DNA of 64,000 nucleotides from Macrostomum lignano (taxonomy: Eukaryota), in contig NIVC01002906.1 of NCBI GenBank assembly GCA_002269645.1, positions 62,001 to 126,000 of the forward strand, given 5' to 3'. Each line of letters opens with the position of its first letter. Within the stretch, counting starts at the first letter, position 1. This document shows positions 11,062 to 43,551 of this stretch, piece after piece. Position numbers and translations under genes: made by a program. The notes under the pieces were generated by a model. That model was given only the letters and a program-made list of their open reading frames with translations. It had not been told where the DNA came from and made no database searches.

Positions 11062-11438
11062 TAAAGTCTGCAGACTGGATTTGATTTGAACTTCCGACTG
11101 GAAAGTCCGGCTGGCAAACCTCGGCGGGAAAACTTCCTGTGGGAAATTCTCGTGCTCCCGAGCGGTAAATCGCCTCTCTTTTGGGTGCAGAAACGAAAAA
11201 GCTGCAGTCGGTTTATCGGCAACAGAAATTCGACGCAGGCCGACGTATCACGTCGATATCCATCGGTGTAATGAAAAGATATCCATTTCTGCTTGAGAAG
11301 GTGGCATCGCTGAGCAGGGGTTCCATGATTTTCTACCCCGGTACTCTGAACCATTAGTTCGTATAAAGTTAGTTCGATCAGAGTATATCACTGGGTCGTA
11401 ATAACTGACAACTGCTTTATGCACCTGCGGACAGTCAC

Positions 11439-12136: not shown

Positions 12137-13133
12137 ACAGTCACTTTATGGGCCTGATTCACAGTTGACGCCCCAGACTCCGCTTCAGGGTCTCCTTGGC
12201 CGAACCACCCCCTGTGGAGCGAGGGGTGCAATCGTGTAGAGACAGAAATAGTTGAAGAAGCATCCGAACCTGGTCCCCAGCACACCCAGGAGATCAAATA
12301 ATTTGAGAGCTAGGCTATAGGCAGGTTTATCCCCATCAGCTTCATCCGCCTCGGCGTCTGGCGGCTCATCAATTTTTTCTGACACGACACTTTACTGCGC
12401 CCTCCGGCTGAAATCCCCGCTCACCCCGAGGGATTCGAACAAAAGGGGGCAGGTCAATGATGATCCACGATTGGCAACACCGCATAGAATTGGGAGGAGA
12501 TCAGGCTAATCCACCTGTAATCCCCTCACGGGTCCTCGACGCGTTCCGATCTTCTCTCAACCGATTGCTCAATTGACGATGGCGGAGGGTGAAACGCCAT
12601 TGCGGTCTGGCCGGCTGCCAAATCAGCCAATTTCACGGGCTTGCGGGTTCTAATTTTCGACAAAATTGAGACAATCAACAGATGCGGATTAGCGAAAGAA
12701 TTTAGGATTATTTATATGTGGAGGGGAAAGAGTGGCTGGAAAAAAATTATGGTGATGACCCGGTCATCTTTCCAGAAATTACGCTTGTGTACGTGATTTA
12801 AGAGAGACTTAACCACCATTAAATGCAGCCTCGGACAATATTAACCACATTAAGCTCACTTTAAGTTATTACGATGGCACGGAATGATGTGACAGCTCGT
12901 ATCAATCTGACGAACTGCATGGGTTTCCGCTGTCTATGGCATTTGGAATGGCCAATGGAATGGAGGGGGGGGGTACCAGGATACCAAAAGTCGAAAAAGA
13001 GCAAAAACAAAAACAGTAATCCATTATTTTCTTTCCTCCATGAGTATACCACAGAGTTCTGCTAGTTCCTGTTTAAACCTTCCTTTAAATCCACAAATAG
13101 ATTTAAATCCTGTTTAAATCCACAAATCTACGA

Positions 13134-13183: not shown

Positions 13184-14166
13184 GAATACGCAGTTAGCGT
13201 CACAGGGCGCGCTTCAAGGCCAGGTCGCGAATGAACGCCACGCCGCCGGCCGAATCCGGGACGCCGGCGTCAGCCAGCAGGCAGTCGACGAAACGCCGAG
13301 TGCGCGCCTGCCCCTGCCGGTAGGTGCCTGCAGCGTCAGCAGCAGCACCTCCTGCACCGGCTGTGGGCAGTACGACTCGGCGCGGATGATGCGGTCTGCC
13401 AGCTGGAGTCGCCGACGGCGCAAAAGGTCGCTTGGACGGACCAGGCCTTTGCGGCGATACAAAGCCGCGTTGGTCACTCGCTCGTAGCCGATCGTGAAGG
13501 CGGCGCGCAGCAGCCCAGCGTGCGCCGCGTCAACCTGCTGCTCGAGCGACTCCGTCAGCGTCCAGGTCTCGGCGTTGTACAGCAGGACGGTCTCGGTCAC
13601 CGCCTGGAACAACGCCACCCTCTGGCGGTCAGGTAAGGCCTCGGACTGCAGGACTGCCCTCACAGAACGAAAGGCAGCCCAGGCAAGCCCGCGGCGACGC
13701 CGCAAATCCTCGCGGACGCTGGGAACCAGACCGCCGAGGTAGACCAACTGCTGACAACGCGGAAGCTCTGTCGCCTTTCCATCAGCGCCTCGGCACAAAA
13801 TCATAGCCTCGATGTCGTCTGGCACGCAGAGCACGACGGTCTTCTGCGTGTTGACCACCAGGCCGACGCTCGCCGCAACAGCAACTAGCTTGTCCATTTG
13901 TCGCTGGGCGCCCTCGACAGTTAAGGACAGCAGGGCGAGATCGTCGGCGTAGCCAAGCACGCTGAGCCGCCTCTCCGGTTGACGTTGACCCACGCGTCGC
14001 CGCAACAGAAAGCCGTCGTCGTTGGTAGGAAGAGCGGTCCGCAGCACCCAGTCAAGCACCAGAACGAACAGGAACGGCGCAAGCGTATCTCGACCAGACC
14101 AGACCGCCGAGGTAGACGAATTGCTGACAACGCGGAAGCTCTGTCGCCTTTCCATCAGCGCCTCGG
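13135..14166 (-). mobile_element. 5'-truncated non-LTR retrotransposon (RTE-like LINE): RT C-terminal half plus microsatellite tail
   Basis: Minus ORF contains RT motifs DTLAPFLFVLVLDWVLR, LGYADDLALL, GLVVNTQKT and YLG, plus the RTE-type region LFQAVTETVLLYNAETW. The 3' end is a (GTT)16 tail (13135-13182). A 1-bp deletion at 13323-13324 shifts the C-terminus; the restored stop is at 13200-13202. No TSD found. Confidence 0.9.
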
Positions 14167-14779
14167 AAAGGAAAGCTAAAAGTGACGCCTTGCGCAGACT
14201 ACTCGTAAGATTCGATTTCAATTCGGAAGAAGCATTATCCAGCGATGACTCGACGGAGATTGAATCAGAATTGAGTCGGAAAGCATGGATTCAGAATAGC
14301 CGAATCCCGAGAGAATTGCAAGAAAAATGAGTGGTTGCTCATGCAGGCCTTCATGAGGTGCAATCAGACACTCGGACCTCGGGAACAAAGGCCGGCTACC
14401 TTCAGGACACAAGCATTCCTGCCGCTTCCACTGATGTTCGCAGAGTTCGTCGCAGTGGTCAAGTTGAACAAATTCCGACTTGATGCATCCTTGATGTAAG
14501 CACATGTCAAAGCCTGATTTAAGCATGCTTGACCGCCGGCCCAGCTGTACATGCCGCTAATTACCGTTGTTAATCCCCGGATTAAATGCTCGTTAACCGA
14601 CCAAAGAAAGCTGCACAGAATTTCTTTTTTTTTTCAAGACCCCACAGTCAGAACAATTTTGTCATTTTGCGAAAAAAGTTGGCCTCCCCCCCTCCCTACT
14701 CGAGTCCCCGACTTTGAGTACTGCCGCTGAGCCGCGCAGCGGAAACCGAGTTCCCCTGCTCCGGCCGAGCAAAGAGCGG

Positions 14780-18070: not shown

Positions 18071-21000
18071 ATGACCGCGCAGAAGCAGCAGATCCTCGGC
18101 AGCGCGTTCAAGATCGACAACCTGCTGAAGGACACGGCGTCGCCTGTCAAGTCCTCCACGTCGTCGGCGATTTCGGCGGAGCTGTCGGGGATGCTCGCGA
18201 CTGGACTGCAGCACCAGCCGCCGCCGCCGCCGCCGCTGCCGTCGACTCCCAGAATGCCGTTTGACTTTGCCGCCGGCTTCCCCTACCCGCCGCTTCTGCC
18301 GCCCCTGAGCGGCGCCTACAAGTGCGACTCGGCCGCCTTCTTCCTGCCCGGCGGCGGTAAGCTGGGATAAAATTGGGATAAATCTCCCATCATTGACACA
18401 CACTGAGGTAGATTGGGATAAATCTCCCATCAGTGACACACACTGAGGTATATTGGGATAAATATCCCATCATTGTTACACTGAGGTAGATTGGGATAAA
18501 TATCCCATCATTGATACACACTGAGGTAGATTGGGATAAATCTTCCATGATTGGCACACATTGAGGTAGATTGGGATAAATCTCCCATCAGTGACATACA
18601 CTGAGGTAGATTGGGATAAATCTCCCATCAGTGACATACTGGGGTAGATTGGGATAAATCTCCCATCATGGACACACTGAGGTAGATTGGGATAAATCTT
18701 CCATCATTGTCACACTGAGGTAGATTGGGATAAATCTCCCATCAGTGACACACACTAAGGTAGATTGGGATAAATATCCCATCATTGTCACACTGAGGTA
18801 GATTGGGATAAATTTCCCATCATTGACACACATTGAGGTAGATTGGGATAAATCTCCCATCAGTGACATACACTGAGGTAGATTGGGATAAATCTCCCAT
18901 CAGTGACATACACTGAGGTAGATTGGGATGAATCTCCCATCATTGGCACACTGAGGTAGATTGGGATAAATCTTCTATCATTGACACACTAAGGTAGATT
19001 GGGATAAATCTCCCATCAGTGACATACTGGGGTAGATTGGGATAAATTTCCCATCAGTGACATACTGGGGTAGATTGGAATAAATCTCACATCATTGTCA
19101 CACTGAAGTAGATTTGAATAAATCTCCCGTCATTGTCACACTGAGGTAGATTGGGATAAATCTCCCATCAGTGACATACTGAGGTAGATTGGGATAAATC
19201 TCCCATCATGGACACACTGAGGTAGATTGGGATAAATCTTCCATCATTGTCACACTGAGGTAGATTGGGATAAATCTCCCATCATTGACACACACTGAGA
19301 TAGATTGGGATAAATATCCCATCATTGATACACACTAAGGTAGATTGGGATAAATCTCCCATCAGTGACATACTGGGGTAGATTGGGATAAATCTCCCAT
19401 CAGTGACATACTGGGGTAGATTGGAATAAATCTCACATCATTGTCACACTGAAGTAGATTGGGATAAATCTCCCGTCATTGTCACACTGAGGTAGATTGG
19501 GATAAATCTCCCATCATGGACACACTGAGGTAGATTGGGATAAATCTTCCATCATTGACACACACTGAGATAGATTGGGATAAATATCCCATCATTGTCT
19601 CACTGAGGTAGATTGGGATAAATTTCCCATCATTGACACACACTGAGATAGATTGGGATAAATATCCCATCATTGATACATACTGAGGTAGATTGGGATA
19701 AATCTTCCATGATTGGCACACATTGAGGTAGATTGGGATATATCTCCCATCAGTGACATACTGAGGTAGATTGGGATAAATCTTCCATCATTGTCACACT
19801 GAGGTAGATTGGGATAAATCTTCCATCATTGACACACACTGAGATAGATTGGGATAAATCTCCCATCATTGGCACACTGAGGTAGATTGGGATAAATATC
19901 CTATCATTGACACACTAAGGTAGATTGGGATAAATCTTCCATGATTGGCACACATTGAGGTAGATTGGGATAAATCTCCCACCATTAACACACTGAGATA
20001 GATTGGGATATATCTCCCATCATTGACACACTAAAGTAGATTGGGATAAATCTCTCACAAATTAAATTGAGCTAGATAGGTACTGGGTGTTAAAATGATA
20101 GTACAATCCCGCAATCCCAGCCTTGCTGTTAATCTCTTTTTGCCCCACCTAACAAGCAGAATTGGCCCGCAATCGGAGGTAACCGCCGCTCTCTCCCCTG
20201 CTGGGAAGATTGAAAGCCCCTCCCCATTGAAAACGGGAGAAAGAATTCCGTTTCCCCAGCACTCGAGGAGAGCACAGCTCGCAATCGGCAGATTCCTGTA
20301 ACAAAATTGGCTCCCCGCCATCAACTTGTTATCGCTTTAGCCAGTCAGTTGGGGGGGGGGCATTGGGATAAACGGATTTACAAAATCTACTTAACAACTG
20401 ACGCCTTATCAAATCAAACGAGCGGGCCTCCCAAACCGACACCTCTCGGCCGACAATGGGGCTGAGCAGGGATGCGATTTACTCACGTGAAATTGAGTCA
20501 GAGCCACGTGGCCACTTCTCGGTAGTCCTGGCCAGTTATTATTGTCAGCCGCTGCTCGCTAAACAGAGTAATCTTGCTTTCTGCCCCTGGGTTCGGGAAG
20601 ATAGACTGAGTCTGGGGCAGTCGCGAGGCGTGGCGTTTATCCCTGATTGAGGCTGGGACAAATCTCTCCTAGTCGCCTCGTCATCTCCTCCTATTTAGCT
20701 TTTTTGCCGTTGATCCCCTTTTCGACCAGAGCCGAAAGCAGAGCAAAGTAAAGCCAGAAGGAAGCAGAGCTCAGATTGCCCAATTAGTCCGGGGATAATA
20801 ATCCCCAGGCTCTGGGAAGCCACCGACTCGGCTAAGGAGTAATTGGCTACCAATTTCTCGGAAATGTTGCATCTTCGTCTTGCAGAAATTTGTGCCGCCC
20901 GTTATGACCTGCACCCGCGCTCTGCCTCCCGTCTGCTTTCTTCTTCTTCTGTCTCTCTGATCCGAGACTTCGTTAACTTTGAAGATTGGCAAAGGGGGCG

Positions 21001-22227
21001 CTGCGGCAATTGCAGAGAAAGAGCAGAAAGTGGAAAATTAGTTGAAGAAAAGCCAGTTATACTTTTGTTCCAGATTGTAATTTCTCAAAATTAGGAATCA
21101 TGACTGAAATCTGGCATGCCGGAAGCAGGATCGGAGCAATGAGTGTACTGATTAAAGAGCAAATATCTGATTGAGTTACTTCAGTTGAAGGCAGGCAGGC
21201 ATTGGAGGCCAAGACTTCCACACCAACCATCTTACTCGTACAGTCTAGCTGACACCTTCACTGCAGCCACAGCAGTTCATAGCTGACCCCACAGTGCCAC
21301 ATGATCAGCAACACAACCCACCCCCTGACCCCACAGTGCCACATGATCAGCAACACAACCCCACCTCCTGACCCCGCAGTGCCACATGATCAGCAACACA
21401 ACCCACCCCGACCCCACAGTGCCACATGATCAGCAACACAACCCCACCTCCTGACCCCGCAGTGCCACATGATCAGCAACACAACCCCACCTCCTGACCC
21501 CGCAGTGCCACATGATCAGCAACACAACCCACCCCGACCCCACAGTGCCACATGATCAGCAACACAACCCCACCTCCTGACCCCGCAGTGCCACATGATC
21601 AGCAACACAACCCCACCTCCTGACCCCGCAGTGCCACATGATCAGCAACACAACCCCACCTCCTGACCCCGCAGTGCCACATGATCAGCAACACAACCCC
21701 ACCTCCTGACCCCGCAGTGCCACATGATCAGCAACACAACCCCACCTCCTGACCCCGCAGTGCCACATAATCAGCAACACAACCCCACCTCCTAACCCCA
21801 CAGTTTACCCGTCCATCTCTCTATACGGCGGCGACCAGTCCGGCAAGGCCTGCCGCAGGCGCAAGGCCCGCACGGTGTTCAGCGACGCCCAGTTGTCCGG
21901 ACTCGAGCAGCGCTTTGAAACGCAGCGCTATCTCAGCACGCCGAGCGCATCGAGCTGGCCAACCAGCTCAGCCTGACGGAAGTCCAGGTGAAGACCTGGT
22001 TCCAGAATCGTCGGATGAAGCATAAGAAGCTGGTGCGCAAGCAGACTGGCCAGCAGCAAATTCAAAGCGGCAACAACGCTGGCGGCGTCCTTGGTAACGG
22101 AATCGGCGGACTCCATGAACACCGCGGCTTAGACGATGGCCGAGCCTCGCTCAGCAGCTTCGGTGACGAGGATGCCGACGTAGACCGGGACGAAGATCTC
22201 AGCCCAGCCTCGATCGAGGAGCCCTGA
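18071..22227 (+). CDS. bsx: Brain-specific homeobox (Bsx/bsh) orthologue, ~236 aa; exons 18071-18356 and 21804-22227; 1-bp deletion at 21943/21944 within the homeobox
   Basis: Exon 1 has an eh1-like motif FKIDNLL (18107-18127) and a G|GTAAGC donor. After the CCCACAG acceptor, exon 2 reads [33 protein letters not shown], then in the shifted frame [33 protein letters not shown]. This matches the BSX-class homeodomain as I recall it ([36 protein letters not shown]...RMKHKK). Confidence 0.9.
18364..20052. repeat. ~38-41-bp minisatellite (CACTGAGGTAGATTGGGATAAATCTCCCATCATTGACA) starting at the Bsx intron 5' end
   Basis: About 42 copies. The array begins within ~10 bp of the donor at 18357. Confidence 0.95.
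21285..21803. repeat. 39-43-bp minisatellite (CTGACCCCGCAGTGCCACATGATCAGCAACACAACCCCACCTC) ending at the Bsx 3' splice site
   Basis: Period of 43 (21451 to 21494), ~12 copies. The last copy supplies the real acceptor CTAACCCCACAG (21792-21803). Confidence 0.95.
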
Positions 22228-23190
22228 CTCCTGGGGAAACCCGGCTCAGTTTCTGTTTTCCCCATCCCTTCCCATGCTAGATTTGGCTTTAACCAAGCAT
22301 TGCAGACTTACATGTAGCACTGCTATTACCAGTATTTCTCGTATGCTGAAAATATGAGGCATGCAATTTTTTGAATCCAGCAGCAGAGAGAACTCATTAA
22401 TTTATTGTGCAATCTTTAGCTTGTTTAACAGATTTGACTTCTGCTACTTGAAGTAGAAGTATTGTGTTCTCTAATCTTATATTCGGTCTAGTGTTACAGA
22501 TTAATGATGACATCTAAAAAAAGATCGTTGAATTCAGTTCTGAAGATTTAATAACGAAAACTATTGCAATGATCCTTATCTTTGCATGCTACTGTTTCCC
22601 AAACATTTACCCTTAAATTTTCGTTTCATAAGTTATTCTGTCAGATTGCTGTTTTTTAATAATTAAGTTTTATCGTGTCCCTGCATTGAGCTATTGAGTT
22701 AAAGTTTTGATATAAGTAACTAAATTTTATGATGTATACAGCACCCTAATTATATGACGATGAAAGAAAATGAATAATGAACCACCTTTATTTAAAAGTT
22801 AAAAACGCCAAGTCGTACATGTACATGTACATATTTAAATCTTCTTTCTCAGCTTGATAGTACCGGTATTGTCAGTAAGGCCGGCGCCATGTATGTACGT
22901 ATACATGCTTGCCCAGCTAACTACATGTACCGGTAGTTCTGCGAGCGCGTAGCGCGCAAGGGTCTCTCCTCTGCGTCCTAATAATATGGGGTTACATGTA
23001 CATTTAGGCTCTTACAAACCATGCAGATCGATTTGCAAATTGCTTCCCAATTTAATTGAAATACCTGCAAAAGTCTCCCTTAGCAAGCAGCACCAAAATA
23101 CGAAGCATTAAAAAATACCAATAAAATTGGCTGATAAGTTTTCAAAGAAAATCTTTGTCAGGTTAGTTTCCAACAGCTCGATGAGGAATG

Positions 23191-25424
23191 GGTAGACTTT
23201 AAAACCCTCCAGAGCCAAACCCTCCAGAGCCAAAAATACTCCACAGCCAAAAAATCTATCTTGGCTGTACGTTTTAACCCCCCAAGACCAAAAATTATTG
23301 GGCTTTGCTAAGCGCGTCCATTTTTATATATCTGTTTCTAAATAGTATATTCAATTGCTGCAGAAATTGAAGGCCAGCCGTTTGTTATTCTGAACCAAAA
23401 CACTCCGGACCCAATTAATTTGCTGTGATAATAGTTATATTCCCCCAATACCAAAATTTGACACCCATTTTTCTGTTTATTTTTTTGTATAAACTGTTCT
23501 GCTGGTTTGATGTAGCAACCAAGGTCGTTGTTATGTATTGGCAACACAAACAAACGAACATTTTAAAATTTTCTATTTTAAATTGCGCGTGCAGCACGTG
23601 CACGGTCTGTGCTAACTGTGTTAGCAGTCCTAGAACTCCTGTCAGTAGTTCAAGAGTATGGGGTACTGTCGTGTATACATCTAGGCATTTTCCTTATTAG
23701 CTAATTCAGTTAATTATTAAGCACATATAGTTATTTTAAAAATAATATTCTTAACGCTAAAATTTAAGAGTGCCGCATGTGCATTCACTGGACAATCTAA
23801 TTTGATTAATCTTAATTCAAATCTAATTCAATCTAATTTAATATAATTTTGGACTATAGCCTAAGACTATCTGGTTTCAACTAAGAATTACCCCTAAAAT
23901 CGCCCTAAAAGTTTGATCCCTAAATGGTCTTATGAATTGCGCCCCAAAGCTGCCCGAAAAATATTACTATAGTCAAATAGTGCCTTTTAACTTTTAACTT
24001 TTAACCATACCATGCTGACATATTTAAGGTTTTATATATTGTAGAATTGCATATCACGTTTGGTTATACTGTTAGTTATTAAAATACATGCTCATGGCAT
24101 GCTTATATATGAGGCTTGAGCTGCATCACATATGCACCTCTTCCAACAGTACTTATCAGTACTTATCACTATTTAGTATTTAATAGTTAATTTCTCATCT
24201 AGAAATGTTTCAAAAAAGGTTCAATTTTTGCTTGGCTGCAAGGAAACAAAACTTAATTCTAATAAATATAAATAAAATATTTCTGATTTTACTGCACCAA
24301 AATCTTCAAAAGCACAAATTTTCTTCTTAATTATACTGAGCTACTGCTGTACAATAGTTAAAAATTTCATAAAGTGTTGTATTAGCAACTATAATGGTTT
24401 CATAAAGAAGAATAACTGATTAACCTCAACACCTCATAAATTAGCACCCCATAAATCAGCACCCCTTCAAGAGGTGCCAACATCTCTTCAATCAGCACCC
24501 CTTCAAGAGGTGCCAGCATCTCTTCAATCAGCACCCCTTCAAGAGGTGCCAGCATCTCTTCAATCAGCACCCCTTCAAGAGGTGCCAGCATCTCTTCATT
24601 CGGTACCCCTTCAAGAGGTGCCAGCATCTCTTCAATCAGCACCCCTTCAAGAGGTGCCAGCATCTCTTCAATCAGCAACCCCTTCAAGAGGTGCCAACAT
24701 CTCTTCAATCAGCAACCCCTTCAAGAGGTGCCAGCATCTCTTCAATCAGCACCCCTTCAAGAGGTGCCAGCATCTCTTCAATCAGCAACCCCTTCAAGAG
24801 GTGCCAGCATCTCTTCAATCAGCACCCCTTCAAGAGGTGCCAGCATCTCTTCATTCGGTACCCCTTCAAGAGGTGCCAGCATCTCTTCAATCAGCACCCC
24901 TTCAAGAGGTGCCAGCATCTCTTCAATCAGCAACCCCTTCAAGAGGTGCCAGCATCTCTTCAATCAGCACCCCTTCAAGAGGTGCCAGCATCTCTTCAAT
25001 CAGCACCCCTTCAAGAGGTGCCAGCATCTCTTCAATCAGCACCCCTTCAAGAGGTGCCAGCATCTCTTCAATCAGCACCCCTTCAAGAGGTGCCAGCATC
25101 TCTTCAATCAGCACCCCTTCAAGAGGTGCCAGCATCTCTTCAATCAGCAACCCCTTCAAGAGGTGCCAGCATCTCTTCATTCGGTACCCCTTCAAGAGGT
25201 GCCAGCATCTCTTCAATCAGCACCCCTTCAAGAGGTGCCAGCATCTCTTCAATCAACAACCCCTTCAAGAGGTGCCAGCATCTCTTCATTCGGTACCCCT
25301 TCAAGAGGTGCCAGCATCTCTTCAATCAGCACCCCTTCAAGAGGTGCCAGCATCTCTTCAATCAACAACCCCTTCAAGAGGTGCCAGCATCTCTTCATTC
25401 GGTACCCCTTCAAGAGGTGCCAGT
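23191..25424 (+). repeat. Left modular TIR: ~1265-bp unique arm plus ~27 copies of a 36/37-bp unit (CAGCATCTCTTCAATCAGCACCCCTTCAAGAGGTGC) at ~24456-25424
   Basis: Reverse complement of 30804-33985. The ORF track gives identical translations on opposite strands (e.g. 24400..24708 vs 32466..32774). Confidence 0.93.
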
Positions 25425-25543
25425 ATCTCGATCTTCAATAAACAACCTTCGGGGGGTGCGAGCACCTCTTTAATCGGTAGGTTGTTGTCACCCGTTTCAG
25501 ATTTAACATTTATTGTACACACTTTTTCTTTTCGTAATTTCAG

Positions 25544-28500
25544 TCGACAGATTGGCAATTTATTCTTGGGAGGCTGCAGTCGGTCTTTCTCGTGGGCCTA
25601 CATGACGCAGCTCTCACTGCCGCAGAGGTGCTAAGAGCAATTGGAGAGCTTCGGCTTCCATCACAGCGTCCCGACCCACAACGCCTCAGATTACTGTACG
25701 GTGAGCAGACAAGCTCTACATCCTTGCTAGATCGGTACGGACCTCACGGCATGACCATCCAAACGACGGGAATTGGAAACTGCTTCTTTGAGTCTGTGGC
25801 GCTTGTACTGACTGGCAGTCGTGAATTTGCTCTAGAGCTGCGTGTGCGCACGGTTATTGAATTGCTCCTAAATTATCGCCAATACGAAGTCTTTTTAGAG
25901 AAAGAAAATGATCTGATTCGAGAGCCTAGTATGACCGCAGTAGTCACGAATGTCATGACTCTAAATTCAGCAGTCGACTGCACTGCAGTTTGTGCCGCTG
26001 CAGAAGTGGTACATGCGGCAATCGCATTTACGTTTCCGCAACTACCGGGAATTGCAGCTACTCTTGCTGGCGTCCTCAAGCGAACATTTTCTCCACGTTC
26101 TGCTATCACTTCACAAGGGGAAATATCCTTGCTCTGGACGAGGGCTGTCGAATGGCCCTACTCAAATGGAAACGGGTGGATTCCCAACCATATCTGCCCA
26201 TTTTTTGGAGGCCAAAGTTTAACAGCAACTGAAGCGGAACCGCAAGTGCTGAGTTCAGAATCACCTATGGAAGATTGTGATGTAGACATGGGGTCTTCAA
26301 GTGCTGCAATGCATGAAGCAGTGGTCGGTAAAAGTCTGCCGGCTGCATCTTGCTTTCTTGGAGTACCGGCAGTAATTTCCGCTGCTTTGAGCTACAATGC
26401 TATCAGGACACCCCCAACGCAGCCAAAAGAGGATGGAATATTTTCTGTGAGCCTAAGTGCGAGTGAAGCGGCAGAAGATGGATGGCGATGGTTGGAGAAA
26501 AAAAGCATTCACAACCGCATTTACGCTAGTGATGGCCGACTGCTACAGCAGTCTGGTGACAATTTCTTTTGGAAGAGGAGATCCGGCCGCCAGTACTCGG
26601 AAGAAATATTGGCCCGCGGCGAGGCCGTTTATGAAATTAGGCAGTTCACCCGTAAGCACGCTTCACAGCCACGATTTGTACAACGAGCATCGGAAGTCCG
26701 CATGCTGCTGCCAGAGGATCGTTTGGTGTCAAGTATCATTGAATACAGCTGGAATGGCGAGCCGGCACCGTTGTGGAATCCACCTCATGGCAATGCAAAG
26801 AAGAACTTTGATTCTCAGCAAAAAGCTGCAAAGAAAAGCTTAGACGAAGCCGCACGTCAGCTTGCAAGCGGTGTGCCTGTGGGGCAAGTCTTGAAGAACG
26901 TTCCAGATCTCCGTGGACGTCAACAATTGCATGGAATCAAAACGAGACTGAGACATAAAGATGAGTCTTTGCTGAGCCAAGAACCATGGACAGTCTTGAT
27001 GAAGATGTGCTGGAGCAACGAAGGTGCGGCACGTTATGTTCGAGGATTTCACACAACATCAGAAGGTAACACTTCAGTGTGGATTTGGAGTGACGCTCAA
27101 GTCTCTATTCTGAATAGCCAGGCCGGAAAAGGGAACCCTATTTGCATTGATACGACGTTTGGTGAGTGCGCGTTTGCTACGTTCATTACTTTCGCTGATC
27201 GTAGGCTTGTTCAGAAAGTTTCTGGAAAGAATGCTACCCTTTTCGGGCCTGGCTTCATTCATACAAAAGAGCGAGATGCTGAGTCTTTGGAGATGTTCCT
27301 TCGCAAACTGAAAGCTTTGGTTCCGAACCTTGATCCAATCTTTTTGTTCTGATCAGGACTCTATGATCATGAAACGGGTCAAGGAAATTTGGCCAAACCG
27401 GATTCACCTTCTCGGTAGAGAGCACCTTTTAATGAATCTGGCGGACAAGTGTCGTAGTTTGGGGATGTCCAATGCTGCTCGACACAGCGTCAAGTCTGAC
27501 TTGTTCGGTCCGGCGTCTTGTGCTGACAGACCTGCCATTCTAAGTGCCGAGAACGAAGAGATTTTTGATGACCGCTTGAAAGAATACTCCAAGCAGTGGA
27601 GTTTGCTCAGTCCTGCAATCACGAATTGGATCGTAGTAAGTACTTCTTTCATATCTACTATAGTTTTGCTAGATTTTAATTGAGGAGGCAAGCAAAACTA
27701 CTTGCATAGAACCAGTTGGAGCTCAGAGATAAAGTATCTCTACACTATCTGTTAGCGATCGGCGCGCATGCAAATTCTATTCCCAATTTTCAGGATCGTG
27801 CCGATATCTACAAGGAGCATGCGTCCAATTGGGTACTGGAAGAAGCAGGAGTCGAATCTGCTTGGCAACAGGCCCAAGAACGAAAAAACCGATCGCTCAA
27901 AGAACAACGGTCACAGCACAAGAAACGCTCACCTGTGGATCTTGCAAGCGAAATGATCAAGCTGGCAGCAAGTGAGGAAGAAGAGGAGAAAGCCACTTTA
28001 ACTGGCAGTAGCGCGAAAGTAAGAATTGCGCCGCAATTCTTACGCTTTGCTGTCGACTCGTCAGATTGGATTCTGTTCACTGACGAGGAGAGAACGAATC
28101 ATATTGCTCGATTCAGAAATTCCACGTACGTTACAAGCACACGCTCTGCAGGCAGCATGGTTGAACTACCCCGTGCGTTGCCTCGTTGCCCTCCCAATAA
28201 AAGAAAAGGGAAGAAACGAAACAGTCGCTTAGGGCGAAATCGTACTCCAGCATTGAATGAGCGGCAACAAATTCAACTGACAGTGCCAAGTCCTGAAGAT
28301 AGCAGTGACTCTGAGGTTCAAGTCCTGCAGCCTGCAGCTGTATCTGCTCAGCAGAATGCCTTTGTGCGAGTGCAGCCAGCCGGTGGTGTGCAGCCAGCCA
28401 GTGGTGTGCAGCCTGCTGCATCTGCTCAGCAGAATGCCTTTGTGCGAGTGCAGCCAGCCGGTGGTGTGCAGCCAGCCAGTGGTGTGCAGCCTGCTGCATC

Positions 28501-29409
28501 TGCTCAGCAGAATGCCTTTGTGCGAGTGCAGCCAGCCGGTGGTGTGCAGCCAGCCAGTGGTGTGCAGCCTGCTGCATCTGCTCAGCAGAATGCCTTTGTG
28601 CGAGTGCAGCCAGCCGGTGGTGTGCAGCCAGCCAGTTTTGTGCAGCCTGCTGCATCTGCTCAGCAGAATGCCTTTGTGCGAGTGCAGCCAGCCGGTGGTG
28701 TGCAGCCAGCCAGTGGTGTGCAGCCTGCTGCATCTGCTCAGCAGAATGCCTTTGTGCGAGTGCAGCCAGCCGGTGGTGTGCAGCCAGCCAGTGGTGTGCA
28801 GCCTGCTGCATCTGCTCAGCAGAATGCCTTTTTGCGAGTGCAGCCAGCCGGTGGTGTGCAGCCAGCCAGTGGTGTGCAGCCTGCTGCATCTGCTCAGCAG
28901 AATGCCTTTGTGCGAGTGCAGCCAGCCGGTGGTGTGCAGCCAGCCAGTGGTGTGCAGCCTGCTGCATCTGCTCAGCAGAATGCCTTTGTGCGAGTGCAGC
29001 CAGCCGGTGGTGTGCAGTCTACTTCTACTTTTGCTGGTAATGGAAATTCGCACTACTGGGAGAACAATGAAGAATTCTGTCTTGAGCTGGCCTCACCCCG
29101 CTCGGTTCAATGCGCCGCTTGTCTGCACCCCATTGTATTTTTAGCTCTAGTCGCGGGAGAGCGGCTAGTACTCCGACACACTGAACATTTTCTGTATCCC
29201 ACTGGCCCTGCTAATGACAAGTGGTCCAGCACCACAGGCTTACAGCACGGAAGCTACAATGTCGCTTTTACCACGCGCGCCGTGCCTGCATTTTCAGTCG
29301 CTTCCGTGAGGCATACTTTGCACAAATGCCCATTCGGCTTGCTAGTGGTGTTCGAGCTGAATTGGCGCGCCATCCAGTAGACTTTTTGCACAAGGATATC
29401 CCTAATTAA
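25544..29409 (+). CDS. Transposase polyprotein ~1260 aa: vertnin-like OTU protease, putative WRKY/GCM1-like DNA-binding region, MULE DDE domain, 26-aa repeats and C-terminal C2HC zinc finger; one 74-nt intron (27636-27709) and two 1-bp homopolymer frameshifts
   Basis: OTU: GIGNCFFESVALVLTGSREFALELRVRTVIELLL...W...PNHICP. DNA-binding-like: DGWRW...PPHGNAK. DDE: CIDTTF (D at 27149), CSDQD (D at 27351), GREH in place of the CxxH motif, and QERKNRSLK (E at 27878). Frame restored by removing one T at 27341-27345 and adding one T at 29266-29269. GTAAGT/CATAG intron is phase 0. Start codon not identified. Confidence 0.82.
28328..29017 (+). repeat. 78-bp in-frame coding tandem repeat (QPAASAQQNAFVRVQPAGGVQPASGV), ~9 copies
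   Basis: Seen directly in ORF 27716..29380. Confidence 0.95.
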
Positions 29410-30803
29410 CAGCATGTATTAGTGATGACTCTACTTTATGAATTAATATTTACAATTTGCAAGTCGTGTATACAAAGTACTGATTGTTGTCATGCTTTTC
29501 ATTGTTTGTGTAACTGCCCTGCTTATGATCGTCGTCGGCGCCCCATACCGATAGTACGAGTGTACTCGAGGTAAATATAGTTTTAATAGCTTAGTTTACA
29601 GTGCGCAAGGAGTTGCTAGATTAAGACGTTGGTACTGACAATTCACGCTTGCTGTTTCTTATTCTTTGTTACTGTTGTGTCTACTTTTTGGCGGCGTTCC
29701 CTTGGATCAGAGGTGTCAAGCGGTAGGCTTTTAATCTATTTACACCTTCACGGTTTTTTATGTTTAACTGATGCCAAATGCCTAATTCCTAGCGCCTAAT
29801 CTTAGCTTTCACGGCTTTAATTGTTAGTCCCTATTTTGAGTCTTCACGACTTCAGTATAGTCCCTATTCCAAGTACTTCCTATGAATCTCCACAACTTCG
29901 GTATTCCCTAGAAAAGAGTCAACATAGGTTTGTAGGTTTATAGGATTTAGCGGAAATTTATTTGAGAGCTAAAAAGCATATTAAAGAAATTACGAGTCTT
30001 CAACAAGATGGTATTTTTCCCGGCTCAGATAGAGCCTTTATGTAGAAATTGTGCGGGAGCACCGGTCAGCCGTAATCGGTGGAAGCGCAGTTAAAACAAA
30101 AAAAGCACAGGGAATATTAACAAAAGCAAAATTACAGCAGAAGATAACATTATAAAACAAATATACGGGAAATTCTATGATTGATCGTAATTCCCGTCCG
30201 ATTACTACTACTTTTAATTTAGTTTACTACTACTATTAGTAAACTAAGTTTTGATTGGTTTGCCACTAATCAATCATCTCTCCAACCTTTGCTTCGGGAT
30301 TACGTCACGCTTCCAACCCTAACACACTGTGCTACTATGCGAGCGTTGACTTTCATATCTCGTATTTTGATCCTATAAATGCACAAGCAATTAAAAAAAT
30401 TGCTCGAGTAGGGTTTCTCTAGAGGCTGAATTTCCGGTGACTGTTTACAAATTCATTTTACGCGCCTTACTTAATCTCTGTATTTCTTCCCTTGGTTTTA
30501 CTATTTACTGCAATTAGTACACTATTTAATATTTATTGCAATTAGTACACTATTTAATATTTATTGCAATTAGTACACTATTCATTATTGATTGCAATTA
30601 GTACACTATTATATAGCTGTGTGAAATGCGCATCATATGTATTCCATTCTGTGGTTCTGTTGATCAAGAATGATAAAGTCATTGGTAATAAAACAGAAAT
30701 AGACGAACGTGCTTTTATTCTGACAATGGACCTAACAAGCTACGATGAAAAGACAAACGCGTACGCTGCATCAGCTTTTTTTCATTGATCTCGTCATTAA
30801 TAG

Positions 30804-33800
30804 GGCACCTCTTGAAGAGGGTTGCTGATTGAAGAGATGCTGGCACCTCTTGAAGGGGTGCTGATTGAAGAGATGCTGGCACCTCTTGAAGGGGTGCTGA
30901 TTGAAGAGATGCTGGCACCTCTTGAATGGGGTGCTGATTGAAGAGATGCTGGCACCTCTTGAAGGGGTACCGAATGAAGAGATGCTGGCACCTCTTGAAG
31001 GGGGTGCTGATTGAAGAGATGCTGGCACCTCTTGAAGGGGTTGTTGATTGAAGAGATGCTGGCACCTCTTGAAGGGGTGCTGATTGAAGAGATGCTGGCA
31101 CCTCTTGAAGGGGTGCTGATTGAAGAGATGCTGGTACCTCTTGAAGGGGTGCTGATTGAAGAGATGCTGGCACCTCTTGAAGGGGTGCTGATTGAAGAGA
31201 TGCTGGCACCTCTTGAAGGGGTACCGAATGAAGAGATGCTGGCACCTCTTGAAGGGGTTGCTGATTGAAGAGATGCTGGCACCTCTTGAAGGGGTGCTGA
31301 TTGAAGAGATGCTGGCACCTCTTGAAGGGGTTGCTGATTGAAGAGATGCTGGCACCTCTTGAAGGGGTTGCTGATTGAAGAGATGCTGGCACCTCTTGAA
31401 GGGGTACCGAATGAAGAGATGCTGGCACCTCTTGAAGGGGTTGCTGATTGAAGAGATGCTGGCACCTCTTGAAGGGGTGCTGATTGAAGAGATGCTGGCA
31501 CCTCTTGAAGGGGTTGCTGATTGAAGAGATGTTGGCACCTCTTGAAGGGGTTGCTGATTGAAGAGATGCTGGCACCTCTTGAAGGGGTGCTGATTGAAGA
31601 GATGCTGGCACCTCTTGAAGGGGTGCTGATTGAAGAGATGCTGGCACCTCTTGAAGGGGTGCTGATTGAAGAGATGCTGGCACCTCTTGAAGGGGTTGCT
31701 GATTGAAGAGATGCTGGCACCTCTTGAAGGGGTACCGAATGAAGAGATGCTGGCACCTCTTGAAGGGGTTGCTGATTGAAGAGATGCTGGCACCTCTTGA
31801 AGGGGTGCTGATTGAAGAGATGCTGGCACCTCTTGAAGGGGTGCTGATTGAAGAGATGCTGGCACCTCTTGAAGGGGTTGCTGATTGAAGAGATGCTGGC
31901 ACCTCTTGAAGGGGTGCTGATTGAAGAGATGCTGGCACCTCTTGAAGGGGTGCTGATTGAAGAGATGCTGGCACCTCTTGAAGGGGTGCTGATTGAAGAG
32001 ATGCTGGCACCTCTTGAAGGGGTGCTGATTGAAGAGATGCTGGCACCTCTTGAAGGGGTACCGAATGAAGAGATGCTGGCACCTCTTGAAGGGGTGCTGA
32101 TTGAAGAGATGCTGGCACCTCTTGAAGGGGTTGCTGATTGAAGAGATGCTGGCACCTCTTGAAGGGGTGCTGATTGAAGAGATGCTGGCACCTCTTGAAG
32201 GGGTTGCTGATTGAAGAGATGTTGGCACCTCTTGAAGGGGTTGCTGATTGAAGAGATGCTGGCACCTCTTGAAGGGGTGCTGATTGAAGAGATGCTGGCA
32301 CCTCTTGAAGGGGTACCGAATGAAGAGATGCTGGCACCTCTTGAAGGGGTGCTGATTGAAGAGATGCTGGCACCTCTTGAAGGGGTTGCTGATTGAAGAG
32401 ATGCTGGCACCTCTTGAAGGGGTGCTGATTGAAGAGATGCTGGCACCTCTTGAAGGGGTTGCTGATTGAAGAGATGTTGGCACCTCTTGAAGGGGTTGCT
32501 GATTGAAGAGATGCTGGCACCTCTTGAAGGGGTGCTGATTGAAGAGATGCTGGCACCTCTTGAAGGGGTACCGAATGAAGAGATGCTGGCACCTCTTGAA
32601 GGGGTGCTGATTGAAGAGATGCTGGCACCTCTTGAAGGGGTGCTGATTGAAGAGATGCTGGCACCTCTTGAAGGGGTGCTGATTGAAGAGATGTTGGCAC
32701 CTCTTGAAGGGGTGCTGATTTATGGGGTGCTAATTTATGAGGTGTTGAGGTTAATCAGTTATTCTTCTTTATGAAACCATTATAGTTGCTAATACAACAC
32801 TTTATGAAATTTTTAACTATTGTACAGCAGTAGCTCAGTATAATTAAGAAGAAAATTTGTGCTTTTGAAGATTTTGGTGCAGTAAAATCAGAAATATTTT
32901 ATTTATATTTATTAGAATTAAGTTTTGTTTCCTTGCAGCCAAGCAAAAATTGAACCTTTTTTGAAACATTTCTAGATGAGAAATTAACTATTAAATACTA
33001 AATAGTGATAAGTACTGATAAGTACTGTTGGAAGAGGTGCATATGTGATGCAGCTCAAGCCTCATATATAAGCATGCCATGAGCATGTATTTTAATAACT
33101 AACAGTATAACCAAACGTGATATGCAATTCTACAATATATAAAACCTTAAATATGTCAGCATGGTATGGTTAAAAGTTAAAAGTTAAAAGGCACTATTTG
33201 ACTATAGTAATATTTTTTCGGGCAGCTTTGGGGCGCAATTCATAAGACCATTTAGGGATCAAACTTTTAGGGCGATTTTAGGGGTAATTCTTAGTTGAAA
33301 CCAGATAGTCTTAGGCTATAGTCCAAAATTATATTAAATTAGATTGAATTAGATTTGAATTAAGATTAATCAAATTAGATTGTCCAGTGAATGCACATGC
33401 GGCACTCTTAAATTTTAGCGTTAAGAATATTATTTTTAAAATAACTATATGTGCTTAATAATTAACTGAATTAGCTAATAAGGAAAATGCCTAGATGTAT
33501 ACACGACAGTACCCCATACTCTTGAACTACTGACAGGAGTTCTAGGACTGCTAACACAGTTAGCACAGACCGTGCACGTGCTGCACGCGCAATTTAAAAT
33601 AGAAAATTTTAAAATGTTCGTTTGTTTGTGTTGCCAATACATAACAACGACCTTGGTTGCTACATCAAACCAGCAGAACAGTTTATACAAAAAAATAAAC
33701 AGAAAAATGGGTGTCAAATTTTGGTATTGGGGGGAATATAACTATTATCACAGCAAATTAATTGGGTCCGGAGTGTTTTGGTTCAGAATAACAAACGGCT

Positions 33801-33985
33801 GGCCTTCAATTTCTGCAGCAATTGAATATACTATTTAGAAACAGATATATAAAAATGGACGCGCTTAGCAAAGCCCAATAATTTTTGGTCTTGGGGGGTT
33901 AAAACGTACAGCCAAGATAGATTTTTTGGCTGTGGAGTATTTTTGGCTCTGGAGGGTTTGGCTCTGGAGGGTTTTAAAGTCTACC
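30804..33985 (-). repeat. Right modular TIR: ~53 copies of the 36/37-bp unit (30804-32720) plus ~1265-bp unique arm
   Basis: Inverted copy of the left TIR. The only difference I noticed in the unique arm is C5 (~23441) vs G6 (~33729). Confidence 0.93.
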
Positions 33986-34242
33986 TGAGGAATGCCCAAC
34001 GATAACCTAAAGTAGGTTAATTAAGAAAATCTTGAGGGAAAGCTCTTTAATTGTTTTATTTTTAAGCAAATTACTTCTAAGTATAAACTATATTAGTCAC
34101 AAAGTGTTTAAATAGTTTGTTATAACGGTATAAAAGCGTCCTTAGATTATTTGCATTTTTGTTTACGCGACCATTAAATCAGTAATAAAAAGTTGTAAAG
34201 GTTAGGTATTGAAAGAAAACATTCCTAAACTAAATTTTCGAG

Positions 34243-40756: not shown

Positions 40757-42215
40757 AGCGCCTGCGGCACCATGAGTGCCTGCGGCGCTAAAATGAGTGC
40801 CTGCGGCGCCAAAATGAGTGCCTGCGGCGCCAAAATGAGTGCCTGCGGCGCCAAAATGAGTGTCTGCGGCGCCAAAATGAGCGCCTTCGGCGCCAAAATG
40901 AGTGCCTGCAGCGCCAAAATGAGTGCCTGCAGCGCCAAAATGAGTGCCTGCGGCGCTAAAATGAGTGTCTGCAGCGCCAAAATGAGTGCCTGCGGCGCCA
41001 AAATGAGTGCCTGCGGCGCCATGAGTGCCTGCGGCGCTAAAATGAGTGCCTGCGGCGCCATGAGTGCCTGCGGCGCCAAAATGAGTGCCTGCGGCGCTAA
41101 AATGAGTGTCTGCGGCGCCAAAATGAGTGCCTGCAGCGCCAAAATGAGTGCCTAAGGCGCTAAAATGAGTGCCTGCGGCGCCAAAATGAGTGCCTGCAGC
41201 GCCAAAATGAGTGCCTGCGGCGCTAAAATGAGTGTCTGCGGCGCCAAAATGAGTGCCTGCAGCGCCAAAATGAGTGCCTGCGGCGCTAAAATGAGTGCCT
41301 GCGGCGCCAAAATGAGTGCCTGCGGCGCTAAAATGAGTGTCTGCGGCGCCAAAATGAGTGCCTGCAGCGCCAAAATGAGTGCCTAAGGCGCTAAAATGAG
41401 TGCCTGCGGCGCCAAAATGAGTGCCTGCAGCGCCAAAATGAGTGCCTGCGGCGCTAAAATGAGTGTCTGCGGCGCCAAAATGAGTGCCTGCAGCGCCAAA
41501 ATGAGTGCCTGCGGCGCTAAAATGAGTGCCTGCGGCGCCAAAATGAGTGCCTGCGGCGCTAAAATGAGTGTCTGCGGCGCCAAAATGAGTGCCTGCAGCG
41601 CCAAAATGAGTGCCTAAGGCGCTAAAATGAGTGCCTAAGGCGCTAAAATGAGTGCCTGCGGCGCCAAAATGAGTGCCTGCGGCGCCAAAATGAGTGCCTG
41701 CGGCGCCAAAATGAGTGTCTGCGGCGCCAAAATGAGCGCCTTCGGCGCCAAAATGAGTGCCTGCAGCGCCAAAATGAGTGCCTGCAGCGCCAAAATGAGT
41801 GCCTGCGGCGCCAAAATGAGTGCCTGCGGCGCTAAAATGAGTGCCTGCGGCGCCATGAGTGCCTGCGGCGCCAAAATGAGTGCCTGCGGCGCTAAAATGA
41901 GTGTCTGCGGCGCCAAAATGAGTGCCTGCAGCGCCAAAATGAGTGCCTAAGGCGCTAAAATGAGTGCCTGCGGCGCCAAAATGAGTGCCTGCAGCGCCAA
42001 AATGAGTGCCTGCGGCGCTAAAATGAGTGTCTGCGGCGCCAAAATGAGTGCCTGCAGCGCCAAAATGAGTGCCTGCGGCGCTAAAATGAGTGCCTGTGGC
42101 GCCAAAATGAGTGCCTGCGGCGCTAAAATGAGTGTCTGCGGCGCCAAAATGAGTGCCTGCAGCGCCAAAATGAGTGCCTAAGGCGCTAAAATGAGTGCCT
42201 GCGGAGCTAAAATGA
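40757..42215. repeat. 21-bp minisatellite (GAGTGCCTGCGGCGCCAAAAT), ~70 copies, with a 231-bp (11-unit) higher-order repeat
   Basis: The GCCTAAGGCGC variant recurs at 231-bp spacing, giving identical ORFs at 41165, 41396 and 41960. Confidence 0.95.
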
Positions 42216-42334
42216 GTGGTGACAACACCGATTCTAAAAATAATTGGTACATTATAATGTGCATTTTCCATATAAAAAAAACAGAAAAACCTAACTCAAC
42301 AAGGGGCGTGCACCCTGTGCGCCCCCACCCCAAA

Positions 42335-43551
42335 ATCCGCCACTGAACCTGCCCCCCCCTAAATCCACCACTGAACCTGCCCCCCCCCCTAAATCCACCA
42401 CTGAACCTGCTCCCCCCTAAATCCACCACTGAACCTGCCCCCCCTAAATCCACCACTGAACCTGCCCCCCTCCCTAAATCCACCACTGAACCTGCCCCCC
42501 CCCTAAATCCACCACTGAACCTGCCCCCCCTAAATCCACCACTGAACCTGCCCCCCTAAATCCACCACTGAACCTGCCCCCCCTAAATCCACCACTGAAC
42601 CTGCCCCCCCCCTAAATCCACCACTGAACCTGCCCCCCCCCCCCCAAATCCACCAATGAACCTGCCACCCCCCCTAAATCCACCACTGAACCTGCCCCCG
42701 CCTAAATCCACCACTGAACCTGCCCCCCCTAAATCCACCACTGAACCTGCCCCCCCTAAATCCACCACTGAACCTGCCCCCCGCCTAAATCCACCACTGA
42801 ACCTGCCCCCCCCCTAAATCCACCACTGAACCTGCCCCCCCCCCCTAAATCCACCACTGAACCTGCTCCCCCCTAAATCCACCACTGAACCTGCCCCCCT
42901 AAATCCACCACTGAACCTGCCCCCCCCCTAAATCCACCACTGAACCTGCCCCCCCTAAATCCACCACTGAACCTGCCCCCCCCTAAATCCACCACTGAAC
43001 CTGCCCCCCCTAAATCCACCACTGAACCTGCCCCCCCTAAATCCACCACTGAACCTGCCCCCCCCTAAATCCACCACTGAACCTGCCCCCCCCCCCCTAA
43101 ATCCACCAATGAACCTGCCACCCCCCTAAATCCACCACTGAACCTGCCCCCGCCTAAATCCACCACTGAACCTGCCCCCCCCCTAAATCCACCACTGAAC
43201 CTGCCCCCCCTAAATCCACCACTGAACCTGCCCCCCCCCCTAAATCCACCACTGAACCTGCCCCCCCTAAATCCACCACTGAACCTGCCCCCCCACTAAA
43301 TCCACCACTGAACCTGCCCCCCCCTAAATCCACCACTGAACCTGCCCCCCCCTAAATCCACCACTGAACCTGCCCCCCCCTAAATCCACCACTGAACCTG
43401 CCCCCCCCCTAAATCCACCACTGAACCTGCCCCCCCCTAAATCCACCACTGAACCTGCCCCCCCTAAATCCACCACTGAACCTGCCCCCCCCTAAATCCA
43501 CCACTGAACCTGCCCCCCCCCCTAAATCCACCACTGAACCTGCCCCCCCCC
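42335..43551. repeat. 26-32-bp minisatellite (TAAATCCACCACTGAACCTG + C6-12), ~42 copies; G-rich on the minus strand
   Basis: Constant 20-mer plus a variable poly-C tract. Confidence 0.95.

Follow-up and report, generated by a model that had tools for sequence, protein, structure and literature searches.

A number of Foldback-like elements have been linked to the transposases of Mutator-like elements (MULEs), i.e., FB and FB-NOF of Drosophila, Tm1 of Meloidogyne, FARE of Arabidopsis, and some of the Phantom elements (PMC3169594). Described here is an element resembling these, found in a 64,000-nucleotide stretch of the genome of the flatworm Macrostomum lignano (assembly GCA_002269645.1, contig NIVC01002906.1, positions 62,001 to 126,000, forward strand). 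That whole stretch is referred to here as the window (1-64000), and all coordinates are given relative to its first letter. The element spans 23191-33985 on the + strand, that is, 10,795 bp, and it is highly probable that this is a Foldback-type DNA transposon, belonging to the Mutator (MULE/IS256-like) superfamily, which inserted here as a single and evolutionarily young event. As with FB, Tm1, and FARE, it combines composite, multi-domain terminal inverted repeats (TIRs), variable tandem repeats, 9-bp target-site duplications (TSDs), and a MULE-type transposase within the loop (PMC3169594). It is unusually well preserved as a foldback MULE, and its architecture of OTU, all-beta, and CCHC domains is apparently undescribed in the searchable literature, but the element belongs to a kind already known.

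Muta1 of Aedes aegypti is a Phantom-group MULE and a 'type 2 foldback'. It has been studied more thoroughly than other MULEs, biochemically as well, and serves as the leading experimental model of mechanism. Its transposase binds the terminal motif, and binding, cleavage, and excision are all enhanced by tandem repeats in the subterminal region. Excision occurs via hairpins on the flanks, with 3'-OH ends then joining target DNA (PMC5499845). The likeness to Muta1 is as a cut-and-paste DDE MULE with 8-9-bp TSDs and with TIRs that consist of a terminal motif plus tandem subterminal repeats (PMC5499845). The Muta1 terminal motif, GGGTCTACCC (complement GGGTAGACCC), also resembles the GGTAGAC found here, a weak resemblance as judged by eye. 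Muta1 differs, however, in being 3.2 kb in length and in having TIRs of 145 bp in which nine 12-bp repeats sit right at the terminus, whereas the element here has a near-perfect TIR of at least 1.78 kb and, unlike Muta1, a 1.26-kb unique arm between its end and a 36/37-bp array. Neither an OTU nor a coding repeat nor a CCHC domain is described in the Muta1 paper (PMC5499845). The Phantom and Tm1 transposases are described instead as FLYWCH plus MULE (PMC3169594), with OTU, all-beta, and CCHC domains not described for them. No match to FLYWCH, i.e., to the N-terminal zinc finger of Phantom, was found in the element's protein or among 49 relatives scanned, with the comparison to Phantom being by this finger.

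Rehavkus elements, in turn, carry satellite repeats in their inverted termini (PMC6446971; bioRxiv 10.1101/2024.12.02.626372). A further comparison is with those transposition enzymes to which a cysteine protease of the ubiquitin/SUMO family is fused or adjacent, and with which PHD fingers co-occur. ULP1 is found in MULEs (KI-MULE/VANDAL, hydra, lancelet), and OTU is found in Ginger1 and Helentrons (PMC2836005, PMC6431247). Bao, Kapitonov and Jurka, on the basis of Ginger1 together with ULP1-carrying MULEs, proposed a link of ubiquitin/SUMO proteases to transposition or repair (PMC2836005). The reported MULE pairing, however, is with ULP1 and not with OTU, while OTU is reported as C-terminal in the integrase-like transposases of Ginger1 and as present in the RepHel of Helentrons. 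Here, unlike in Ginger1, the OTU domain is N-terminal to a MULE DDE core. The literature that was searched, which did not extend to the entries of Repbase and Dfam, yielded no description of OTU fused to a MULE transposase, nor of Macrostomum MULEs, and OTU goes unmentioned both in a 1,631-element MULE survey with its supplements and in a 2026 arthropod survey.

Element boundaries and terminal arms

A perfect 9-bp TSD, TGAGGAATG, directly abuts both ends of the element, at 23182-23190 on the left and at 33986-33994 on the right, an exact match whose probability of occurring by chance at fixed positions is 4^-9, i.e., ~4e-6. Just within these lies a terminal 26-mer, GGTAGACTTTAAAACCCTCCAGAGCC, which occurs exactly twice in the 64 kb, at 23191-23216 (+) and, inverted, at 33960-33985 (-), with none expected by chance. 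An earlier, sequence-only reading of this DNA had claimed a perfect 9-bp TSD and exact inverted ends, and both claims held up as stated. The empty-site sequence has no occurrence elsewhere within the window.

From the ends inward run two unique arms, the left at 23191-24453 (1,263 bp; + strand) and the right, its reverse complement, at 32721-33985 (1,265 bp; - strand). Global alignment of the two, with the right arm reverse-complemented, reveals 0 substitutions, and the differences consist of two 1-bp homopolymer indels, C5/C6 at 23442 versus 33734 and A5/A6 at 23957 versus 33218. These arms had been called near-identical with one homopolymer difference noticed; near-identity is seen but the indels number two. 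The outermost 251 bp of the TIR are exact. A near-perfect inverted repeat, interrupted by the two 1-bp indels, extends over ~1.78 kb and is followed by array sequence which is homologous though non-colinear.

Each composite TIR can be described as consisting of three modules, namely a GGTAGAC... motif at the terminus together with 4-5 short repeats in subterminal position, the 1.26-kb unique arm, and a 36/37-bp minisatellite. Four subterminal direct repeats, each of 15-20 bp and AAxxCTCCAGAGCCAAA-like, adjoin the terminal GGTAGAC within the outermost 100 bp (23203-23295 on the + strand, mirrored at 33881-33973), and a weaker fifth copy is present ~120 bp further inward, at 23399-23418. These subterminal repeats are candidate transposase-binding sites. 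Foldback elements structurally are those with long, multi-domain composite TIRs that include tandem repeats of variable copy number, as here with 26 versus 52 units, and the Foldback-type, multi-kb termini claimed previously are thereby confirmed. The TSD, at 9 bp, falls within the 8-11 bp (typically 9 bp) of Mutator (MULE/MuDR) elements, while the TIR, like Mutator TIRs, which often are long (at least 100 bp), well exceeds that length.

Long and near-perfect palindromic arms are, however, a known product of chimeric long reads, and the structure might therefore be viewed instead as an artefact of assembly or as a rearrangement, e.g., an inverted duplication around a captured gene, rather than as a transposon. 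That view must contend with an exact 9-bp TSD at both ends, with a terminal motif found also in an independent relative from another sample, with inner arrays that are asymmetric, and with a central gene which is the transposase of a superfamily producing 9-bp TSDs. An artefactual origin consequently is extremely improbable, and that this is instead a real foldback MULE insertion is held with great confidence.

Mirrored minisatellite arrays

The third module of each TIR is a tandem array of 36/37-bp units, located on the left at 24454-25429 (+ strand; 26 full units, or 26.9 copies according to Tandem Repeats Finder, TRF) and on the right at 30804-32720 (- strand; 52 full units, or 52.7 copies according to TRF). 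For comparison of their order, unit variants were coded as letters. The 26 units on the left read FAACABDABACAB and then AAAAABCAECAEC, and the 52 units on the right begin FAACABDABACAB-DABACAAAAB.... The outer 13 units thus are identical between the two arrays, with the inner parts sharing common variants while differing in order and length. Arrays described in the sequence-only reading as mirrored are therefore indeed an inverted pair, with outer units the same, but an unequal one. Being identical on the outside and unequal on the inside, they fit with unequal exchange or slippage within arrays, along with homogenisation from arm to arm.

The window as a whole is packed with minisatellite arrays, with periods of 12-43 bp. 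Examples are found at 598-1425, 2071-2717, 18372-20054, 21283-21804, 40772-42218, 42324-43550, and 50164-52796, none of the others being an inverted pair such as that formed by the element's arrays.

The transposase gene

A single gene is found inside the element, on the + strand at ~25544-29409, which as assembled is divided among three open reading frames (ORFs) by one intron and two frameshifts. That the three long +-strand ORFs (25592-27352, 27330-27683, and 27716-29380) are pieces of one gene is seen upon alignment with relatives. One internal transposase gene is what had been claimed, and there is just the one, though split as assembled. Exon 1 is at 25544-27635, its open frame beginning after a stop, TAA, at 25535-25537. 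An intron of 158 bp follows, in phase 0, with borders GTAAGT...TTTCAG (27636-27793), and exon 2 then runs from 27794 to 29409, ending upon repair with the stop TAA at 29407-29409. The position of the intron is conserved in three relatives (P0004, P0005, and L004), that is, the gene predictions of P0004 and P0005 run into the intron at the same codon and the L004 locus resumes ~78 bp later. A shorter GT-AG intron of 74 bp (27636-27709) has no support from homology. Beyond the gene is a non-coding 3' internal region (29410-30803, + strand), containing a 28-bp repeat of 4.1 copies at 30497-30610 and in which no second gene was found.

The first frameshift is found between the codons for the first two catalytic aspartates, where the assembly has a T5 run (27341-27345) and relatives require T4. 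Upon repair to T4 the protein reads ...NLDPIFCSDQDSMIMKRV..., matching the ...LQPVFCSDQDSMI... and ...LTPVFSSDQDSMF... of relatives. The second is found at 29266-29269, there being a T4 run where relatives require T5, and as assembled the frame stops at 29378-29380. Repair to T5 supplies a C-terminus of ...SYNVAFYHARRACIFSRFREAYFAQMPIRL...HKDIPN, followed by the stop, which matches the C-terminus of relative P0152 at 54% identity. The intron as well as both of these repairs are adopted because they are dictated by alignment with relatives.

At the other end of the gene, the frame is open upstream to the TAA at 25535-25537 and homology to relatives reaches ~25550. No in-frame ATG exists between that stop and 25751, which is the first. 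An acceptor-like TTTCAG ends in phase at 25543 (AG at 25542-25543), to which a leader exon possibly is spliced. Neither an upstream exon nor a PHD-coding stretch was found in the 64-kb window, whether using tblastn with the N-termini of four relatives or using a profile of the N-termini of 35 relatives. That 126-position profile, when compared with the six-frame translation of the window, matched the known ORF only, from model position 46 onward.

Protein domains

The family of this protein is reached through its relatives. A first, word-indexed protein search returned only one weak match, while an exhaustive HMMER search of 1.84 billion representatives returned 310 relatives at E<=1e-3, including 12 at E<=1e-30. 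Among the 49 relatives that were scanned with Pfam, MULE was found in 29, OTU in 24, PHD in 12, and Transposase_mut in 10. PHD, OTU, and MULE furthermore are found together within single proteins, e.g., KAK3103000.1 of Pinctada imbricata and XP_039258759.1 of Styela clava, and the element's protein aligns with the Pinctada protein (P0015) over both the OTU region (E 6e-19) and the MULE region (E 8e-14). A sequence search of the PDB produced nothing significant. An AlphaFold model, built with 96 sequences, has a mean pLDDT (predicted local distance difference test) of 86.4. The top Foldseek matches of this model within the PDB are to the IS256-family ISCth4 transposase (E 1e-5), with OTU deubiquitinases matched as well, i.e., A20, TRABID, DUBA, OTUD3, and viral OTUs at E 5e-5 to 5e-3, with OTUD1 also among the OTU domains matched. 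Relatives, the predicted fold, and conserved residues together show a protein that contains an OTU-like protease domain, an all-beta domain, an IS256/Mutator-type DDE core, a coding repeat, and a CCHC domain. The domains listed by the sequence-only reading (OTU, MULE DDE, coding repeat, and zinc finger) accordingly were correct, though demonstrable only by way of relatives and fold.

The predicted OTU-like cysteine-protease domain (25751-26206, + strand) is supported by relatives, by the fold model, and by conserved residues. Its Cys (25781-25783, within GIGNC) and its His (26189-26191, within PNHICP) align with the DGNC...NHF of relatives.

Next is a conserved, all-beta domain (26342-26809, + strand) which is modelled with a pLDDT of 93.7 and which possesses the motifs DGWRW and HGNxK. 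It occupies the position where MULEs usually carry a DNA-binding finger of WRKY/FLYWCH type, and it is by that position only that it is presumed to be DNA binding. Identity as a WRKY/FLYWCH-type finger was considered but rejected, there being no Pfam match, and no PDB match was found using Foldseek (best E 0.34). The motifs DGWRW/DDCGxW and HGNxK are common to dozens of relatives.

The DDE catalytic core, as delineated by relatives and fold, is encoded by 26990-27900 (+ strand, intron excluded). Its catalytic triad consists of D1 at 27149-27151 (ICIDTTF), D2 at 27351-27353 (CSDQDS), and E at 27878-27880 (AQERKNR), with a spacing of D-67-D-123-E. In relatives these residues correspond to the columns DxTF, xDxD, and NxxESxN/QERKN, and they are contiguous only after repair of the first frameshift. 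Structurally, the catalytic region as modelled is matched best by the ISCth4 transposase already mentioned (PDB 6xgx, 6xg8, 6xgw; Foldseek E 1e-5), which is bacterial, with IS256 representing the prokaryotic branch of the Mutator superfamily. ISCth4 differs in that sequence identity is 11-15%, TM-scores on the target are low (0.40-0.42), and it has no OTU, repeats, or long TIRs. Assignment to the Mutator superfamily, as had been claimed, agrees with the 9-bp TSD, the TIRs, and the DDE triad, with the MULE link coming via relatives and fold.

An alternative assignment is to the Rehavkus group. Its members are foldback elements related to MULEs, and they are characterised by 9-bp TSDs, by a PHD finger, and by minisatellites that are subterminal or C-terminal. 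The general layout agrees with what is described for that group (PMC6446971; bioRxiv 10.1101/2024.12.02.626372), i.e., 9-bp TSD, long TIRs in which satellite-like tandem repeats are carried, an internal minisatellite, a length of 5-18 kb, and a PHD finger, this last being seen in the element's relatives. The DDE core, however, is not detectably Rehavkus-like. A hidden Markov model (HMM) of six Rehavkus DDE domains (PMC6446971, supplement) has no match in the element's protein at E<=100, and its best E among 153 relatives is 0.07. Profile-profile comparison using hhalign yields a probability of 44% over only 81 columns around the second Asp. The Rehavkus motifs DATGS, VTDxS, CxAH, and NxxxExxF also contrast with the DTTFG, SDQDS, GREH, and QERKN of the element. 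With this failure of the DDE core to match and with no PHD finger in this copy, membership in Rehavkus is rejected as very improbable.

Downstream of the DDE core is an in-frame coding repeat (28337-29017, + strand), with a 78-bp unit, i.e., 26 amino acids, that is present in 8.7 copies which are 98% identical. The 26-amino-acid repeat is absent from relatives L002 and L004. The C-terminal, conserved CCHC domain (29040-29409, + strand), which is zinc-finger-like, has an invariant CxxC...YHx4C, with its Cys at 29111, Cys at 29120, His at 29272, and Cys at 29287, the latter two being in frame only after repair of the second frameshift. The PHD finger found in 12 of the 49 relatives was sought both within this copy and across the whole 64-kb window, and no trace of it was detected.

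A signature described as C/D(2)H, located after the second Asp, is common to MULE and hAT transposases.

Relatives and lineage

One relative, P0011 (~24% identity, with a PHD finger), is found on a 27-kb contig, L007, between inverted arrays with a 174-bp unit that are 99% complementary. The L007 element spans 1036-9238 (8.2 kb), and both of its ends read GGTAGATACTAAAACCCT, versus GGTAGACTTTAAAACCCT in the M. lignano element. The pattern GGTAGAYNNTAAAAC is found, among the relative loci that were fetched, only at the two ends of the L007 element. Because an element with P0011 has the Foldback layout and also a near-identical terminus, this architecture is a lineage trait rather than a one-off. 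Of other relative loci, the contig ends of L003 fall within its TIRs and L006 has no clear TIRs. The L007 element and the M. lignano element share the terminus GGTAGA...TAAAACCCT. Immediately beside that element is a second one (L007, 9610-13974), with TIRs of several hundred bp and a THAP/P-element-like transposase.

The architecture had been said not to be matchable to a named family. This was too strong, as Foldback-type MULEs are described, as layout and terminus recur in L007, and as PHD-OTU-MULE proteins exist in Pinctada and Styela. A considerably broader reading is that there exists a widespread but undescribed Mutator lineage (flatworm, bivalve, tunicate, and many marine samples) in which the transposase unites PHD, a deubiquitinase-like OTU domain at its N-terminus, a novel all-beta fold for DNA binding, a DDE core with G/C(2)H, and CCHC, in which the foldback TIRs have a conserved GGTAGAyxxTAAAACCCT terminus, and of which the M. 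lignano copy is intact as well as mobile. Taken in its entirety, this reading is rather improbable.

Age and activity

The insertion is probably young, because its TSD is perfect and its arms are without substitutions, and a recent insertion is what had been claimed previously. Several observations nevertheless weigh against reading the locus as a young, Foldback-type MULE insertion with an OTU-MULE transposase. TIR identity is a weak clock, as the arms of foldback elements can be homogenised by conversion. Direct use of Pfam fails on this copy, with no match, including to MULE, for the three raw ORFs, no OTU match for the repaired protein, and, for MULE (PF10551) after frameshift repair, only a sub-threshold match (E=0.054; 14.4 bits versus a cut-off of 27.6 bits). 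Recovery of a MULE domain by HMM search, a check set beforehand, thus is marginal. In addition, a catalytic Asp or Asn completes the OTU triad, which in Otu1-type enzymes is the Asp of the DGNC motif, and at that position there is Ile here versus Asp in most relatives and Asn in P0152. In the C/D(2)H signature (27414-27425), which reads G-R-E-H (LLGREH), the His (27423-27425) is kept, but at the first position this element and its closest relatives have Gly, versus the Cys (C-x-x-H) of more distant family members. At the ends of the L007 element no clean TSD is visible. Lastly, no other copy, empty site, or transcript was found in the collections searched. That is, a metagenome protein scan, a scan for the terminal 26-mer, and a scan of viral contigs supplied no further copies, and exact-product look-ups of window ORFs found no match, with the closest protein anywhere being 63% identical.

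The sequence-only reading had also viewed the copy as intact-looking and as possibly a still active, autonomous element. The sequence as assembled does not support this, and the copy cannot be called autonomous given two frameshifts (27341-27345 and 29266-29269), no in-frame ATG before 25751 and hence no start codon that can be identified ahead of the OTU domain, and no PHD finger. I lean, if only slightly, toward the copy being non-autonomous and recently inactivated, that is, with the frameshifts and the loss of 5', PHD-coding sequence all real, while the ends are intact and mobilisable in trans. The frameshifts strike the DDE core, between D1 and D2, and also the CCHC domain. The N-terminal homology breaks off at position 46 of the 126 in the model, precisely at the beginning of the left array region, and both ends of the element are perfect. 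Inactivation would have to be extremely recent, however, as there is neither substitution-type damage nor a stop codon, and these data fit with assembly error too.

The frameshifts may be assembly errors, and with that the copy could instead be fully intact and autonomous, with both the frameshifts and the arm differences representing homopolymer errors of assembly, and with translation starting either in an upstream exon or at the ATG at 25751. Each of the four anomalies is the gain or loss of one base in a homopolymer of 4-6 nucleotides, and 0 substitutions are seen over 1,263 bp of arm and a further ~520 bp of array. If the two shifts are set aside, no stop interrupts ~1,235 codons, and all catalytic or invariant residues are kept. 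Indel discrepancies between assemblies of this species furthermore do exist, as a host exon of the window departs from a UniRef M. lignano protein only in short stretches where the frame is shifted, and the TTTCAG ending at 25543 would serve, in phase, as an acceptor. Homopolymers, however, are true hot spots of slippage too, neither tblastn nor the profile of 35 N-termini located an upstream exon or PHD-coding sequence within the window, and a start at 25751 would delete helices that are confidently modelled within the N-terminal fold. With all four anomalies of homopolymer type, and with assemblies known to disagree by indels, real frameshifts and assembly errors look the same here. An intact, autonomous copy is doubtful. 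With the start and the PHD finger missing as well, it is similarly doubtful that the copy, as it exists in the animal, encodes a working transposase.

By analogy with Muta1, movement of such an element would involve oligomers of transposase that bind the terminal motif as well as the subterminal repeats of both ends. Excision would then be via double-strand breaks, through hairpins formed on flanking DNA, and 3'-OH ends would be joined to cuts in the target that are staggered by 9 bp, which would give rise to the TSD. The 9-bp TSD, the DDE triad, and the terminal plus subterminal repeats seen here would fit with this scheme. It is speculation that the OTU domain, the usual catalytic Asp of which is missing in this copy, acts on ubiquitin-dependent host repair or silencing.

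Significance

As an aid to annotation, the locus supplies a clean reference for a large foldback MULE, with exact ends, a TSD, a gene model that includes an intron, and a domain map. A consensus of the family could be built from it, in a genome that is very rich in repeats. The carrying of 36/37-bp minisatellites within transposon arms represents one route of satellite DNA spread. OTU-like proteases are seen here with a third type of transposase, after Ginger1 and Helentrons, and at the position of ULP1 in the MULEs of plants and cnidarians. The notion that DNA transposition repeatedly makes use of ubiquitin/SUMO proteases as accessories is thereby strengthened. Furthermore, the place normally held in MULEs by a DNA-binding zinc finger is here occupied by a domain which is modelled with confidence but has no solved relative. 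What is known of the movement of Mutator elements is unchanged by these findings. Were the broader lineage reading to be true, with the M. lignano copy in fact intact and mobile, it would supply a native cut-and-paste vector for an animal that is a model of regeneration, and also a test case for why transposases recruit deubiquitinases.

Other features of the window

A MITE-like (miniature inverted-repeat transposable element) sequence of ~698 bp is found at 11431-12144, with 259-nt TIRs that are 99% complementary and separated by 180 nt. Its TSD of 8 bp, ACAGTCAC (11431-38 / 12137-44), is of a length typical of hAT, and its ends are CAAGGACGACTTAAGTAG. No Rfam RNA families were found in the window. 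A reverse-transcriptase fragment is present at 13214-14221 on the - strand (Pfam RVT_1, E 9e-7). An ORF at 58973-59788 (+) resembles, by eye, a PAN/apple plus C-type lectin domain, although Pfam returned no match for it at E<=0.01. Exons of a gene for a coiled-coil protein are found on the - strand at 53715-54149 and 54976-55131. One of these exons is 100% identical over 52 amino acids to a UniRef Macrostomum lignano protein (P0160), and the neighbouring exon differs only by short frame-shifted stretches. By this identity the host would be M. lignano or a very close relative. Toward the end of the window, at 61841-62347, is a short inverted-repeat structure, with 73-nt arms of 95% complementarity and a 361-nt spacer, which is possibly another MITE.

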